DNA of 32,000 nt from Wallemia ichthyophaga EXF-994 (lineage: Eukaryota > Fungi > Basidiomycota). A model generated the notes under the pieces. It searched no databases. It was given only the letters and a program-made list of their open reading frames with translations, and was not told the origin of the DNA. Below, one piece after another: positions 2,398 to 11,341 of this stretch. Position 1 is the first letter of the stretch; every line of letters begins with the position of its first letter. The DNA lies in contig NW_008806287.1 of NCBI RefSeq assembly GCF_000400465.1, positions 90,001 through 122,000 on the forward strand. Reading direction: 5' to 3'. The position numbers and the translations under genes were made by a program.

Positions 2398-4965
2398 ATG
2401 AGAGCGAGAAGGCTGTTCAGTACTGCAGCAAGCGAGACCAATAAGCTTTACATATCATCTATATTCCCAATCAGATACGGTCGTTTCGATCCACGTTACG
2501 CTTACTCGTTGCTTCGGGAGCATTCCCTGATCGATTACCTCAGAACAAGACTAAACGATAATGGAATACGCGTGCATTCAATAGAATCGCGACTGCGAGA
2601 GGGCGGAGCATTTGTTACAGTATCAGAAGATAACAGCTTATCAACGAAAAGCATACGTAATCAACTAATCGATAATGGTAACTTGAGGAAGACAACGCTA
2701 TTGAATACGAACGTGTTTCCTGTAATCGGTTCTCCCTTTAATGAGGATATGGATCGATATCCATCAGCCCAACTGAGAGTGGATTATAACGGTCCTCAAA
2801 TATCCCAGGAGGAGCTCTACAATATATTCAGACGATATGGTCGCATTATGGAGATAGAGTCCAGTAGTGGTGGCTTTGATCTTACATACCAGTCAACCTC
2901 TGCTAGTACAGCAGCTCGTTCCTGTGTACATGGCTTTGTCACAGATAGTGGCACTAAACTGAAGCTAACGTATCAGCCGAGAGTATCTAAACACTTCTAC
3001 AAAGACTGGATAATGTCTCATCCCCGTATCGTTGTACCACTCCTAGTCTTCTTGATTGGTGCAGTTAGTTACGTCATCTTTGATCCAGTGAGGGAGTATG
3101 CAATCAAGAGCAAGGTGATGCGCACGTTCAGTCTTGATGCAGTGAAGAAGAAGTGGCTCGTCTTTGGTGACAACTCTGTCAAATCATCGAGTGACGGTGT
3201 AGTCGCCAGCGATATCCAGGAGAGGAGGGAAGCTTTCGAGTCGGTAAATATATGGCTGAATGAGTCGCCCTCGACTTTCATTACTCTCACTGGTGCTCGT
3301 GGATCTGGTAAGAGCTCCCTCTTGAAGAATCTCATGCGCGATCGTCAAGTACTCTCAATCGATTGTGCTCAAGTGTGCAGAGCCGAAAATGACGCTCAGC
3401 TGGTCACTGAACTCGCCGATCAGACTGGTTACTGGCCAATCTTTGGTTTCTTGAGCAGCGTTTCTAATCTACTCGACCTCGCCAGTGTTGGGTTGATCGG
3501 CACAAAAGCGGGATTCGCTACACCTTTGGAAGATCAACTAAAACAAATCCTCTCAATCACAACTAAGGCTGTGGAGAAAGCTAGGGATTTAAAGTTTTCA
3601 GCATCAAAATCTCAACATGATGACTTGAAACTTGGTCTGAAACAGGCTGCTGAGGAGGAGGTGAGAAAGAATTCAAACTCCTTCTCACACGATGGAAGAA
3701 TCGATTGCATTGCCGGTAATGGAATAATGAGTGAACTCGGTGTTGGGATAGAAACTGATGACATTGATGATCAAGTATTATCGCTTACTTTGAATCGACT
3801 TGAAGGGTTAAATAAGAACAATTATGATGAAGAGAAAGAAAAGATCAAGAGTATACCAGTAGTTATTGTCAAGAACTTTGACTTCAAAGGAGCAGATCGT
3901 GACGTGTTGTTCGACGTACTGAGCACTTGGGCGTCTAATTTAGTACTTGCGAAAGTTGCTCATGTTGTCTTTGTGTCTGATAACGTCAGTTCTAACAAAC
4001 GCTTAGCCAAAGGTGAGTAGAGTTATCACCAATTGAACATTAATTTATTGTCTCACACAGCCTTACCAAACAAGCCACTCAACTCTATCAGTTTATCCGA
4101 TGCTGACATGCATAACTCTGTCAAATTTGTTATGAATAGACTGAGGAATCTAACTCTTAGTAGTGATGACAAGAAGCTTATCGAGTTAATTGGTGGACGT
4201 GTTGAAGATCTTGAAGATGTGAGTGGTTGATGGTGTCGATTGATAATCCTATTAATCGTTTATCAGTTAGTGCGCAAGGTGCGCTCGGGATTGAGCATTC
4301 AAGAGGCTATCAATCAGATAGTAGTGACGAGTGCTAGTGAGCTACGTCAAAATATTCTTGCCAAGAATGAGCATGGATGGAAACCTGAAGAGGCATGGTC
4401 AATTATAAAGGAGCTCTCAAAAGAAGAGAAGGTAAGCTGATTGTTAATATCTTAATTTGCAAAGATGATCTAATAAGGACGTTTAGGTCAGCTACGCGTC
4501 AACATTAATTAACTGGCCTTTCACAGGAAACGAAGGATCATTGCAAGCACTCGAACAGCATGATTTAATTACAATTGTTCATAAGAATGGCAGACCAGCT
4601 GATATTGTCTCTGGGAAGCCAATTTATCGTACTGCTTTTAAGCAGTTAGTTAATGGTGAATTGTGGAAAGTGATATATGATGTATAGCTAACGACACCTC
4701 TTCAGACTTACCATACAAAGCGCTTTTAGATGTAACTTCAAACAAACTAAAGAGGGAATATAAGGAGGGACAGATTAGAAAGTGGGAAACAGAGCTGTTA
4801 GATTTGAAGAATATAGGTTTAGATGACGGGACATTCTTCACATCATTTAGATCACCTTCAGCTACTCAATTACGCGCAGAATATCTCCTCAAACAGATAT
4901 ACGCAGCTCAATCAACAGTCAACAAGATTGAAAAAGAGTCAGATAAGCTAAAGAAAGTAATGTAA
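2398..4965 (+). CDS. YME2: Mitochondrial escape protein 2 (RRM + RNA12/AAA-like domain), 788 aa
   Basis: Exons 2398-4012, 4061-4218, 4267-4431, 4487-4655, 4706-4965. Presequence MRARRLFSTAAS, GSPFNEDMDRYPS, RRM (LYNIFRRYGRI), TM segment WIMSHPRIVVPLLVFL, Walker A GARGSGKS, DQTGYWPIF, GKPIYRTAF. Confidence 0.95.
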
Positions 4966-6634: not shown

Positions 6635-8583
6635 ATGAAAAAGAGCAAAAGTTTGCTCAAAAATCTACAGAAATCTGACAAAGAATATGAGAATAGCTTG
6701 ATAAATTGTACTCAATTTGGTAATATTTCTGCCTCTGCCTTGTTGGCGTTGGGATCTATTGACGACAGTGGATCAATAAACTTTGTTGGGAATATTTTCC
6801 AAGAAATCAACAATTGCAACTCAAACTACACAAACACTTTATTCAAATGTAGACAATCCATTGATCAGCTCATCGATCAAGAGAATCACTATTATCAAGT
6901 TGATAAAGATAGGCAATTACTCATCTCCCAAGTTATAAAGGCTAGCTCGAAAAAGTCTAATCAAAATAACTCTACATCCCCCGATAAACTCAATGAAGCT
7001 CAAAATGAGTTGAGAGCTTGTCAATTTCATTTAACTGAACTTGAACTCGATTTAATGGCAAGTAGGCAACGTATCATTAACTCCACTATTCAGTTAAAGC
7101 TGTCTGCTTTATCTGAGTTAGGTGAAAATTTTACCAAACTAGCAAATCAAGGCTTAGATCACTTTAATTCTGTTCCTACCTCAGCAAATTTACTTGATAA
7201 TACTTCTATTGACTCCTTGAGCCCTTCTCAATCTGCTTCTCAAATTAACGTTGAATCTAGACGCAACTCCATTGTTAAATCTAGATATTTAAGTGATTCT
7301 CACCAACAAAAGCCTTCCATGTTCACTGAACAATTTAGCGTTAGTTATTCCATCTTTTTCAATTTGCTTTTCCCCTAACATATCCAATTCAGGTTTCTTC
7401 CATTCAATCCCCTTCCCCCAAACCTTCCCCTCAACCTCAAAGACAACCTTTATTCCCACCACCACCAAATCAATCCAAACAATCTCAACAAAAACCTGCT
7501 GGCTTTTTAAGAAGGTTGTTTGGAGTTGGTAGTAAGAAACACTCTAATCACCTCAACCAAGTTAAACAAGATAAACAAGACAAAGCTGAGAAACCTGACA
7601 AAGCGGAAAAAGCTGAGAAACTCTCAAAACCTTCTAAAAAGAACCTTTTTAATGTTGCTTGGGGAAGCAAAACTTCAAATCTTGACCCTGATTCTCCTCC
7701 TTCTCAACCTAAACAATCTAATGGCTGGCAAACTAGAACTACCTCAAACATTAATTCTTTAGAAAGAGGCGATTCTAGTGATGATGATGACGGCAGTAAA
7801 TTCGTTACTGTCACCAATAAAAATCCACAAGCAGCAATTGCTGAAAATATCTCTCGCCAATCTTCTGCTACGTCTGCAAATCAAACTCAAAGGAAAATTA
7901 AACAATCTTCTCGTCGTCACTCCAGATCTAACAGTCTTGGTGATAGTCAACGTCCCTCTTCTTTACCTGAGAGACCTTCATCTGCCGCTAGCTTACCATT
8001 AAATGCCCATGGAACTAAGAAGACTAAAAAGCCTTCAAAGTATTCCACACTTACATCCTCCCCACAAATTAATAGCAATTCACTTACTACAAAGCCTACA
8101 TCTAAGAATCTTACTTCTAATGGTACTAATCATCGCAAACCAGCTAACAGTACTACTCCACGTAACCGTAAAGTAGTCGTACATCCAAATCTTATGAGTA
8201 TCGTCGAGGGTGATAATCTTGATCAGGATTTCAATCCGTCCTCTCATACAAACGGTACAAACGGTATAAAAGTCACAAAGAAATCTAAAGGTAAACAGCC
8301 GGAGCATTTACCTTCATCAGTACATAGTTCCCCAATTTCATCTTTAAATAATCAAAGTCTTGCTCCTATACGCAAGGATAGTAATAGATCGAGTAGATCT
8401 GATCATATGTTGCCCAAAAATGTTAGTTGGGCTCAATCACCTGCTCCACCGCACTCCATATCATCTCAGAGGAGTTTAAAATCAAACAGAGAAGAAAACG
8501 ATGATTCTTCTGATGATGATAATGGTGCGTATAATGCTGCAAGATCTCAACTTACACCACTTGACTTTTCCACTCTGAAATAA
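6635..8583 (+). CDS. Uncharacterised protein, 631 aa: N-terminal coiled-coil (Pil1/BAR-like) plus long S/N/K-rich disordered tail
   Basis: Exons 6635-7339 and 7393-8583; a 53-nt phase-0 intron GTTAGT...CTAAC...CAG joins the two ORF-track fragments. LLKNLQKSDKEY, DKDRQLLISQVIKAS and KLNEAQNELRACQFHL resemble, from memory, a basidiomycete Pil1-like family. Gene model strong, family call tentative. Confidence 0.7.
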
Positions 8584-8720
8584 TCAAGACAATTGTCTCA
8601 AAACACTCCTTTAGAAATCCCATTTTTAATTTTCTTGTTGTAATCCTGTTGCCTTCTTATTAATTTTACACTCGCCAAAGATAGGCAGGATTAAATCATA
8701 CATCTTTCTAGCCGACGACC

Positions 8721-11341
8721 ATGACGATCTCGATAAACCACCAAGAGCAGCAAAAATGGCGTAGTAATTTTGAAAGCTACGCCAATGTATCCAAAGATGG
8801 CGTTAAATATCTCGATAAAGCAGCATTTCTCGATGCTGTCGCTCCTCGTTCCGGTAAAGGTCACGCCAGAATATCAAGAGAGCAATATAACGTCTTCTTT
8901 GATGTTGCAGATAAATCAAAAAGAGGCCTTATATCCGTGAGTTCCCTTGATATATAAGCTGCTTTTCCTTCCTCTCGTTAAATCGCGGGGCACCATGCAG
9001 CACAAGGCACGAATGACCGCTAAAATTACTTCAGGCTGATGACTTTATTGCGTTTGAAAACTTGTTGAAGCAGCCAGATGCTCCTTTCCAGGTTGCTTTT
9101 CAATATTTCGATAGGTACGCGTGCACAGATTCACATGACTCATCCTCAAGACTAACACTCGGCGTAGACGCAACAAAGGTTCCGTCTCCTTTAGTGACTT
9201 TAGAAATGTTTTCAGCCAATACCTCGGTGAGAAGGCTATTCCCTTCGACTTTGAGTGCGATTGGTTGAGGCTTTATCTCGGAAAATTGTCAGAATCCAAC
9301 GAACATGTTTTGCCTTATCATGAATTTACTCAGATGATGAAAGGCTTACAAGGTGAAAGAATCAGACAGGCTTTTCACTACTTTGGTGAGTTTTTATCAA
9401 CTATATAATGAAATTGCTTATACTGTCTTCAAGATAAAGGTTGGCTCCCTTAACTTCTATTTAATATGCTCAAATCATTATTAGATAATGATGGCTGGAT
9501 TAGACCGGAAGACTTCCAAAAAATTATACTAGTATGTAGCACTTTTCATCCCTTTCCACCTGTCTTACGTCACTTAAAAGGAGGTAGCCTCTCATAAGCT
9601 CTCAGGTTCAGTTCTAGATCGATTACCCTCTCTATGTCATATCACTGCAGACCAAAGGATCTCTTACGCTGACGTTAGAGCCTTCTACAATGTTCTTCAC
9701 GATATGGACGCCATAGAGCATGTCGTCGACATTGCTACATCTCAAGCATCCGATGGAAGAATCTCTCCTTCAGATTTCTTAGCAACTGCACAGCGTAACA
9801 CTCGTTATGGAAGCTTTTCACCAATGGAGGTTGCTTTCGCTTGGCATCTAGCTTCTCCAGGGGCTGTTGGTAGAGCAGGTACACCAGAACCGGACGTTAG
9901 ATTATCCAAAGCAGATTTTGATTCCCTATTTGATCCAAACTGGACCCCTATTGAGGCACTTGCTCCATCTCAACCACCAAAATCAGCACTCCACGAAACC
10001 TTAATAGGTATTTACAACTTTGCTCTCGGTGGTTTAGCAGGTGCTACTGGCGCTACTGTCGTATATCCAATAGATTTAGTCAAGACGAGAATGCAAAACC
10101 AGAGAGCTGCAGTTGTTGGTGAAATGATGTATGCCAACAGTATTGATTGTGTAAAGAAGGTTTTCAAAAATGAAGGCTTTACTGGGTTTTATAGAGGCTT
10201 GTTACCACAACTTGTTGGTGTCGCCCCAGAGAAGGCCATCAAGTTGTGAGTTGCATGCTTATCACAATCAAGTTTCGCTAAAGTATTTCAGAACCGTAAA
10301 TGACGCAGTGCGTCACCTTGCACAAAATAGAGATAATGGTTCCATCAGTCTTCCCTGGGAGATTGTTGCTGGTGGTGCTGCTGGTGGTTCGCAAGTCTTT
10401 TTTACCAATCCACTCGAGATTGTCAAGATCAGATTGCAAATTCAAGGTGAAGCTGTTAGAATTGGTGAAGCTCAGCCCAGGGGTGCATTCCATATCATCC
10501 GTCAGCTAGGTTTGCTTGGTCTCTACAAAGGCGCCACGGCCTGTTTGCTCAGAGATGTTCCATTTTCAATGGTTTGTGCGTTGATTGCTTATTCTACTTT
10601 TTCTCTTGCTAATTCTCTCAACCAGACTTCACCTCTTATGCGCATTTGAAGAAGGACTTTTTCAAGGAAGGTGTGCACGGTAAGAAGCTTGGCTTCGGCG
10701 AAACCCTGCTATCGGCAGCGGTAGGATTTGGACTTTTCCGTGCAACAAAAAAACTAATCATGTCTTAGATTGCCGGTATGCCTGCTGCTTATTTCACTAC
10801 CCCAGCAGACGTGATCAAGACTCGTCTCCAGGCTGAAGCTAAGCAAGGCCAAACAAGCTACAGAAATGTTGGCCATGCTTTCACAAGCATCCGTGAGTAT
10901 TTTGCTTTGTATTCACATGGCCTAGTTTCTTAGACTTTTTGTTAGTAAGGGAAGAGGGACCAAAAGCTTTGTTCAAGGGTGGCCCTGCTAGAGTTTTGAG
11001 AAGCAGTCCACAGGTAAGTGTAGCGGTTTACAAAAAGGCGACCTTGACATTCATTTAGTTTGGTGTTACTTTGGTTGCCTATGAGTGGCTGCACAAGCTG
11101 ATGCCAGTAAGTGATGAGCTAATCAATGTCTCAAATCTTATCCCCAATTAGTATCCATTCCAAAGCTCTGATAAGCCTTCTGTCAGTGCTTTACTGCCAC
11201 AGCGGGAAGAGGATATCACAAGAGTCAGAGCCCGTAACGCTCTCAAGCTGTTGTTGGATACTCGTAAGTAGTTGTGGGTTACGCATTGGCTATTCTCACG
11301 ACTGAGTAGATTGTGACTTTGGCCATGTCCGAGTGCACTAA
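8721..11341 (+). CDS. AGC1: Calcium-binding mitochondrial aspartate/glutamate carrier (aralar/citrin type), 664 aa
   Basis: 13 exons: 8721-8936, 9035-9114, 9168-9385, 9434-9439, 9485-9531, 9581-10245, 10292-10575, 10626-10720, 10769-10892, 10946-11013, 11059-11106, 11152-11263, 11310-11341 (1995 nt). N-terminal EF-hands and three carrier signatures [24 protein letters not shown]. Confidence 0.96.

Follow-up and report, generated by a model that had tools for sequence, protein, structure and literature searches.

A 32,000-nt stretch of the genome of the salt-loving basidiomycete Wallemia ichthyophaga EXF-994 (contig NW_008806287.1; positions 90001 to 122000, forward strand), referred to here as the window, includes a gene for a mitochondrial carrier that reads on the + strand from a start ATG at 8721 to a stop codon at 11339–11341. 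Hand modelling and translation of this coding region (8721–11341) gave 13 exons separated by 12 introns, with a product of 664 amino acids (aa). Within it lies a segment of 99 nt (9386–9484) that could be taken for a single intron, but comparison with related genes indicates that it very probably consists of two ordinary spliceosomal introns around a genuine 6-nt coding exon, ATAAAG. This hexamer supplies positions 1 to 3 (Asp-Lys-Asp) of the loop of the fifth EF-hand in the N-terminal regulatory domain.

Pfam analysis of the predicted protein detected three Mito_carr repeats (PF00153, E=1.8e-71) C-terminal to the N-domain, together with EF-hand families, and residues 11–281 aligned with human aralar (4p5x, E=7e-39) and citrin (4p5w, E=3e-35). 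The alignment to the human structures and the Pfam matches agree on an N-terminal domain of ~300 residues with an eight-EF-hand fold, and the closest homologue matches carry the source names AGC1 or SLC25A12/13. Judged by these features, the gene is that of a basidiomycete mitochondrial aspartate-glutamate carrier of the aralar/citrin type (AGC1), with exchange activity predicted by orthology, and the identity given to it in the initial annotation stands on the carrier repeats, the EF-hand N-domain and the human aralar alignment. Rfam and tRNA scans of the window gave zero matches.

Exon 3 (9168–9385) ends …CAC TAC TTT G (…CACTACTTTG, to 9385), the last G being base 1 of the Asp172 codon. It is followed by a 48-nt phase 1 intron (intron 3, 9386–9433, GTGAGT…TTCAAG) with a strong donor and a weak AAG acceptor. 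The hexamer (9434–9439) then contributes bases 2 and 3 of the Asp172 codon, the whole of Lys173 and base 1 of the Asp174 codon, and is separated from the next exon by a second phase 1 intron of 45 nt (intron 4, 9440–9484, GTTGGC…TATTAG), in which the donor is weak and the acceptor strong. Exon 5 (9485–9531), which begins ATAATGATGG… (AT AAT GAT GGC TGG) and reads through to KIIL, encodes the remainder of the EF-hand 5 loop and the exiting helix. The 49-nt intron 5 (9532–9580, GTATGT…TTAAAAG) also has an AAG acceptor, and Glu190, which follows KIIL, is present only when that acceptor is in use. The division of the 99 nt into 48 (GTGAGT…AAG), 6 and 45 nt (GTTGGC…TAG) had been made in the initial annotation, and proved exact on re-reading.

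Candidate branch sites were identified by reading the sequence. In intron 3, CTTAT at 9417–9421 (A at 9420) is a candidate, and the AAG at 9431–9433 is the first AG 3′ of this A, 13 nt away; intron 11 also has CTTAT at a comparable distance from its acceptor. In intron 4 the candidate is CTCAA at 9469–9473 (A at 9472), which is resembled by the branch-like motifs CTCAC and CTCAT in introns 12 and F1, and CTTAAC at 9449–9454 is an alternative. The expected inclusion transcript contains TTTGATAAAGATAATG, and the k-mers spanning the inclusion and skip junctions are CACTACTTTGATAAAGATAATGATGGCTGG and CACTACTTTGATAATGATGGCTGG, respectively. Retention of intron 3, intron 4 or both brings in-frame stop codons into the transcript. 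When the hexamer is skipped, 99 nt (33 codons) are removed and the frame is kept, in agreement with the frame-preserving skipping described at the outset.

The hexamer in a close relative and in fungal homologues

The AGC1 gene of a close relative was recovered from ENA and Logan metagenome assemblies using a long exon query, as one cluster (P0121) from which ten contigs (L005–L014) were examined. The protein encoded is 84% identical to that of W. ichthyophaga, the upstream gene is syntenic, and exon 3 of the window aligns to positions 3436–3662 of contig L005. All ten contigs encode the loop without an intron (…CATCACTTTGATAAAGATAATGATGGATGG…), and an unbroken run of 20 nt in the relative (TTTGATAAAGATAATGATGG) is identical, base for base, to TTTG, ATAAAG and ATAATGATGG of the window joined end to end. 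This identity with DNA that is uninterrupted across the loop is the strongest single argument for a coding hexamer. As it extends across both junctions, and as the protein alignment is gap-free in nearly all homologues (below), the hexamer corresponds to coding bases of its orthologues.

The Wallemia-like relative recurs across several studies, in at least 24 metagenome contigs of up to 95 kb (ENA ERZ272488xx, ERZ27275090 and ERZ2860xxxx ‘KERN20-1…’, and Logan SRR27437227), and could belong to a Wallemia species that is common indoors or on food. The GC content of the window is 40.5%, compared with a mean of 45.4% for the W. ichthyophaga genome, and that of the relative’s locus is 32%, the chromosomal neighbourhood of AGC1 being locally AT-rich in both. 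A JGI metagenome scan for relatives or transcripts returned 62 pattern matches, with 0 relatives among them.

A search with the N-domain yielded 120 fungal homologues, the best with 52% identity. The inclusion form of the protein aligns without a gap over the loop with 119 of these, and with human aralar and citrin. A full 12-residue loop is found in 119 of the 120 and a 10-residue loop in none. Conservation within the loop is high (D1 in 119, K2 in 98, D/T/S at position 5 in 119, G6 in 120, I8 in 117 and P10 in 119), and 20 of the fungal homologues have a non-acidic residue at position 12. With the exon included, residues 172–183 of the 664-aa model form a loop with D1, D3, D5, G6, I8 and D12, which has the 12 residues, ligand spacing and flanking helices of a canonical EF-hand. 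The Pfam matches to EF-hand_7 (162–225), EF-hand_6 (163–188) and EF-hand_5 (164–187) are obtained only with this form. Without the hexamer the loop is reduced to 10 residues, Asp1 is gone and the canonical pattern is lost. The spacing and the inclusion-dependent matches bear out the earlier claim that the exon completes a canonical 12-residue loop. In Tulasnella sp. 419 (L001, ~2215–2290) the corresponding sequence, YF-SDADGYIKPDQ, is without Asp at position 1 and represents a natural degenerate EF-hand 5.

Introns flanking the hexamer were found neither in the ten contigs of the relative nor in seven outgroup loci (from Tulasnella, an Auriculariales species, Cryptococcus depauperatus, Puccinia sorghi, Hermanssonia, Ceratobasidium and Rhizopus), i.e. 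the exon-intron architecture is not conserved in these genes; Puccinia has an intron after loop position 6. When the AGC1 genes of the window and the relative were compared, 15 intron positions were obtained, with 7 common to both, 5 seen only in the window (including introns 3 and 4) and 3 only in the relative. Introns 6 and 7, also confined to the window, are again absent from the seven outgroups. The position of intron 5 (KIIL/E) is common to the relative and to four Agaricomycete outgroup orthologues. This distribution suggests that introns 3, 4, 6 and 7 are recent gains, and parsimony favours recent acquisition of the two introns flanking the hexamer in the W. ichthyophaga lineage. The exon would then be evolutionarily young, the two introns having arisen 6 nt apart in a stretch that is uninterrupted in relatives. 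Alternatively, both introns may have been gained in a Wallemia ancestor and then lost jointly in the relative.

Among 20 modelled introns, introner-like similarity was not detected (best score 21 against a shuffled maximum of 22), and introns 3 and 4 scored 13 against each other. An origin by target-site or tandem duplication was considered and rejected, as the apparent repeat, AG/ATAA occurring twice, can already be read in the uninterrupted sequence of ancestral type, GATAAAGATAATG.

Intron turnover in this gene is fast, with only 7 of the 15 positions common to 8721–11341 of the window and 3013–5590 of L005 despite the 84% protein identity. The relative has a tiny exon of its own, the 12-nt AAAATCATATTA encoding KIIL (L005, 3758–3769), between introns of 54 and 50 nt and ~30 nt downstream of the position of the 6-nt exon. 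In the window the same bases are joined to the upstream exon. In this region (L005, 3704–3819; also seen in L006–L014), two strains have TTTCAG in place of TTTTAG at the acceptor.

The hexamer is invariant in nine W. ichthyophaga strain loci. These are ~99.8% identical, with one single-nucleotide polymorphism in intron 4 (9480 A>C), and are too alike to gauge constraint.

Intron sizes, splice signals and skipping

The eighteen other introns modelled, from AGC1 and an adjacent formate dehydrogenase (FDH) gene, were used as the basis for local lengths and for a position weight matrix (PWM). Seventeen of them are 42–53 nt long, confirming that 99 nt is, as first noted, twice the local norm. A single 99-nt intron would be an outlier, though one with a precedent, whereas the 48- and 45-nt pieces fall within the local mode, and both have GT…AG ends and branch-like motifs. 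A hidden exon was also sought in AGC1 intron 1, which is 98 nt long, and was rejected, as there is no AG-N6-GT candidate and the homologues align gap-free there.

The probability that a coding hexamer would be found by chance was estimated from 200,000 99-nt introns generated with a Markov model, requiring AG-N6-GT with at least 38 nt on each flank. The frequency of exact ATAAAG was 2e-5, that of D-K-D 5e-5 and that of any loop-compatible D-x-[DNS] 0.35%. In the real 9386–9484, ATAAAG is the sole frame-preserving AG…GT candidate. The gap-free alignments, the base-for-base match to the intron-less relative and this low chance expectation together uphold the original proposal that the exon is real.

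The outer splice sites scored near the top of the local range using the PWM (donor at 9386, 10.0 bits; acceptor at 9484, 6.4 bits). The inner sites lie in the weak tail (AAG acceptor at 9431–9433, 0.7 bits; donor GTTGGC, 2.4 bits) but within the accepted range, as a matrix trained on just 18 local introns had leave-one-out minima of -3.3 (acceptors) and -1.2 (donors). AAG is likewise the acceptor of AGC1 intron 5 and of intron 2 in the relative, and GTT donors occur twice among the FDH introns and twice in the relative. The further suggestion in the initial annotation, that the weak AAG acceptor favours skipping, finds no support, given that this acceptor also serves intron 5, whose position is conserved, and an intron of the relative. 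The splice signals permit some skipping, without indicating any.

As the introns are only ~45–50 nt long in a compact genome, intron definition, in which the two splice sites of one intron are paired, is the most likely mode of recognition. The small introns would then be excised independently of each other, and the exon between them may be arbitrarily short. In intron 3, the acceptor would be the AAG at 9431–9433, the first AG past the likely branch site. Under this mechanism inclusion would be the default and probably near-constitutive, and the skipped in-frame product, with a 10-residue loop and no Asp1, would be a minor by-product at most.

It is possible, though doubtful, that the exon is mostly included but is also skipped at a low, unregulated level, the outer donor pairing with the outer acceptor to give a minor functionless product that escapes nonsense-mediated decay. 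The asymmetry in splice-site strength and the in-frame skip product are compatible with such leakage, and the 98-nt intron in AGC1 shows that the machinery handles an intron of that size. However, with a short-intron optimum the 48- and 45-nt pairings have the advantage, and exon skipping is nearly absent from the W. ichthyophaga transcriptome (PMC3849046). In that RNA-seq study, carried out at 10% and 30% NaCl, 730 genes were alternatively spliced, mostly by intron retention (PMC3849046), and one exon-skipping event was recorded genome-wide using TopHat mapping, which may handle a 6-nt exon poorly (PMC3849046). Neither the loop peptide nor the skipped gene was found in the supplements of Zajc 2013.

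The EF-hand 5 loop and calcium

The initial annotation had also proposed that skipping of the exon toggles the Ca2+ sensitivity of the carrier. The loop, encoded by 9383–9385, 9434–9439 and 9485–9511, aligns to human EF-hand 5 and not to the Ca2+-sensing EF-hand 2. In the human aralar and citrin structures, Ca2+ is bound at EF-hand 2 only, and EF-hand 5 is closed in all states, without bound Ca2+, and is one of the hands (EF-hands 4–8) that make up the static dimerisation unit (PMC4250520). Citrin Gly176 lies in the dimer interface, and G176V is a disease mutation (PMC4250520). Counted on the alignment with the human structures, Gly176 is the loop glycine. As human EF-hand 5 is interfacial and Ca2+-free, and as a change at its loop glycine is pathogenic, loss of two residues from this loop would sooner be expected to impair folding or dimerisation than to tune sensing. 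The toggle as proposed thus finds no support in the human counterpart of this hand.

In the 120 fungal homologues, the EF-hand 2 loop is degenerate, with the consensus D-R-R-K-T-G and Arg, Lys or Thr at ligand positions 3 and 5. In W. ichthyophaga, where this loop (8910–8936 and 9035–9043) is split by intron 1, it reads D-K-S-K-R-G, with Arg at position 5. EF-hand 5 has the only canonical DxDxDG loop in the fungal AGC1 proteins and, if a fungal AGC1 senses Ca2+, it would be the candidate sensing hand, in which case the fungal carriers may differ from the human ones. The Saccharomyces cerevisiae carrier, Agc1p, is wholly without EF-hands (PMC8539049).

A regulated cassette exon, with controlled inclusion and skipping switching Ca2+ binding by the EF-hand and thereby the sensitivity of the malate-aspartate shuttle, is very unlikely. 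The exon is phase-symmetric (1-1) and its skipping is frame-preserving; weak inner sites stand between strong outer ones; the loop affected is the only canonical EF loop of the fungal AGC1s; and there is a precedent in one regulated fungal micro-exon, that of Trichoderma Xlr2 (PMC11121469). Against this, a skipped AGC1 transcript is not known, the W. ichthyophaga RNA-seq data include the one exon-skipping event mentioned above (PMC3849046), and the AAG acceptor recurs in intron 5, whose position is conserved, and in the relative's intron 2. The 10-residue loop occurs in 0 of 120 homologues. Human EF-hand 5, Ca2+-free in the structures, forms part of the dimer interface, and the G176V change, which maps by count to the loop glycine, causes disease. 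In addition, the introns on either side of the hexamer are absent from the nearest relative and from the seven outgroups, and examination of intron positions in other AGC1 genes, which had been suggested as a check, shows that the supposed switch is not conserved.

A switch might instead be new, the two intron gains 6 nt apart having created weak inner and strong outer sites that yield a minor or conditional isoform without Asp-Lys, in which Ca2+ binding or dimerisation is altered. This seems, if anything, even less probable. If true, a skipping switch would be a rare case of a regulated fungal micro-exon acting on a metabolite carrier, but no finding points that way.

Public gene models and other tiny exons

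Public annotations were compared on scaffold KE007237.1 of GCA_000400465.1 (W. ichthyophaga EXF-994; PMC4987115), which is 100% identical to the window over 11,852 nt, and on strain loci. The strain contigs were located by an exact match to an intron-less protein of the window (ORF 854–1849), which identified 19 NCBI contigs. The reference annotation, made with GeneMark-ES (PMC3849046), has a model of 656 aa at 8721–11271 of the window. Five MAKER strain annotations have 654 aa over the same span, and in three strains AGC1 is fused to the upstream Ser-rich gene to give 1,020 or 1,021 aa. For a span of 2,551 nt with nine other introns totalling 487 nt, one 99-nt intron leads to 654 aa and introns of 48 and 45 nt lead to 656 aa. 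The 656-aa product also has the stronger precomputed EF-hand matches. It is very likely, from these lengths and matches, that the reference model already contains the hexamer and that the 654-aa MAKER models are without it. The expectation that gene predictors would miss the exon was therefore met by the five MAKER models but not, apparently, by GeneMark-ES. The 654-aa models drop the conserved Asp-Lys and, with it, a recognisable EF-hand.

Several points weigh against the interpretation of 9386–9484 as two introns and a coding exon. Both inner splice sites score low, and the outer pair could draw splicing away from them. A length of 99 nt does not by itself betray a hidden exon, as intron 1 of the same gene reaches 98 nt and hides no exon. 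The loop of Tulasnella sp. 419 has 11 residues in unbroken DNA, and loop length is thus not absolutely fixed. Finally, the presence of the exon in the 656-aa model was deduced from lengths and Pfam marks, not from the sequence of that model. A single 99-nt intron, with the hexamer never included and a protein with a shortened, degenerate loop, accords with the five 654-aa strain annotations, the 98-nt intron 1 and the 11-residue loop tolerated in Tulasnella, but is highly improbable, as it needs a coincidence of ~2e-5 by which the coding bases of the relative are correctly placed between AG and GT so as to leave mode-sized introns, and sits poorly with the 656-aa reference model and with Asp at loop position 1 in 119 of 120 homologues.

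The public models also differ from the hand-built model at the 3′ end of the gene. The 654- and 656-aa models end at the TAG at 11269–11271 (…LLDTRK*). A further 46-nt phase 1 intron (11264–11309, GTAAGT…GAGTAG) and a 32-nt last exon extend the C-terminus, and the relative shows the same structure (L005, 5495–5551; …HCDFGRVRVQ*). It is this downstream stop that terminates the three fused MAKER models. The C-terminus of the public AGC1 models is probably wrong. Across the loci compared (L015–L017, L021–L026; equivalent to 7319–11341 of the window), models for neighbouring genes also disagree between annotations (for instance, 104 and 788 aa versus 839 aa, and 396 and 166 aa versus 517 aa). As the strain DNA is ~99.8% identical, the disagreements between strain models are annotation artefacts and not biology. 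Inconsistent models within one species can mimic strain differences in pangenome or orthology analyses, and the practical value of the finding lies in annotation.

Tiny exons are known from other fungi. In Coprinopsis cinerea, internal exons no longer than 15 nt, down to 1–3 nt in some cases, occur in 1,165 gene models (~9% of genes), and omission of the exon breaks the frame or creates a stop in 835 of the 1,165 (~72%) (PMC12230235). A 1-nt exon is described for Fusarium CYP621A in PMC12940212. The AGC1 exon resembles the constitutive micro-exons of intron-rich fungi in that it is a tiny coding exon between short GT-AG introns that restores a conserved protein and is easily lost by predictors. 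However, in contrast to most of the Coprinopsis cases, its omission keeps the frame and creates no stop, and whereas the Coprinopsis micro-exons rest on long-read cDNA, the exon in AGC1 is known here from sequence comparison.

Like the micro-exon of Trichoderma virens Xlr2, inclusion of which decides whether a functional domain is present (PMC11121469), the AGC1 exon completes a domain. For Xlr2, both isoforms have been seen and are glucose-dependent (PMC11121469), whereas a second isoform of AGC1 is not known. In its place within the protein, the AGC1 loop corresponds to EF-hand 5 of human SLC25A12/13 (4P5X, 4P60 and 4P5W), with the same domain position, a gap-free alignment to DKSKSGMISGLD and a conserved Gly6. 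The two systems differ in that the human sensor is EF-hand 2, with EF-hand 5 Ca2+-free, closed and in the dimer interface, whereas in the fungus EF-hand 2 appears degenerate and EF-hand 5 appears canonical.

Intron-definition splicing of micro-exons was shown experimentally in Schizosaccharomyces pombe (Romfo et al. 2000, as cited in PMC11121469). The arrangement in AGC1 is similar in that short introns would be recognised as units and exon length would not be limiting; the mechanism is experimental in fission yeast, and in Wallemia it is suggested by intron sizes. Independent removal of short introns is the accepted explanation for tiny exons in fungi.

The neuronal micro-exons of animals are 3–27 nt long, lie between long introns, are tissue-regulated with dedicated enhancers and factors, and are conserved over long times. 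The AGC1 exon is like them in inserting one or two residues in frame into the surface of a structured protein. In contrast, it is lineage-specific, lies between introns of 45–48 nt and is without sign of regulation.

The 6-nt exon of AGC1 is therefore best regarded as an ordinary member of the known class of fungal tiny exons, very probably one that is already in the reference annotation, and it is a further case in which an exon only a few nucleotides long is tolerated in a fungus whose introns are very short. Two other observations are possibly worth more than the exon itself. One is the turnover of introns, with only 7 of 15 positions in common and each of two Wallemia-like genomes carrying a tiny exon of its own. 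The other is that the canonical loop of the fungal AGC1 proteins is that of EF-hand 5, and not that of EF-hand 2, the sensor in the human carriers.

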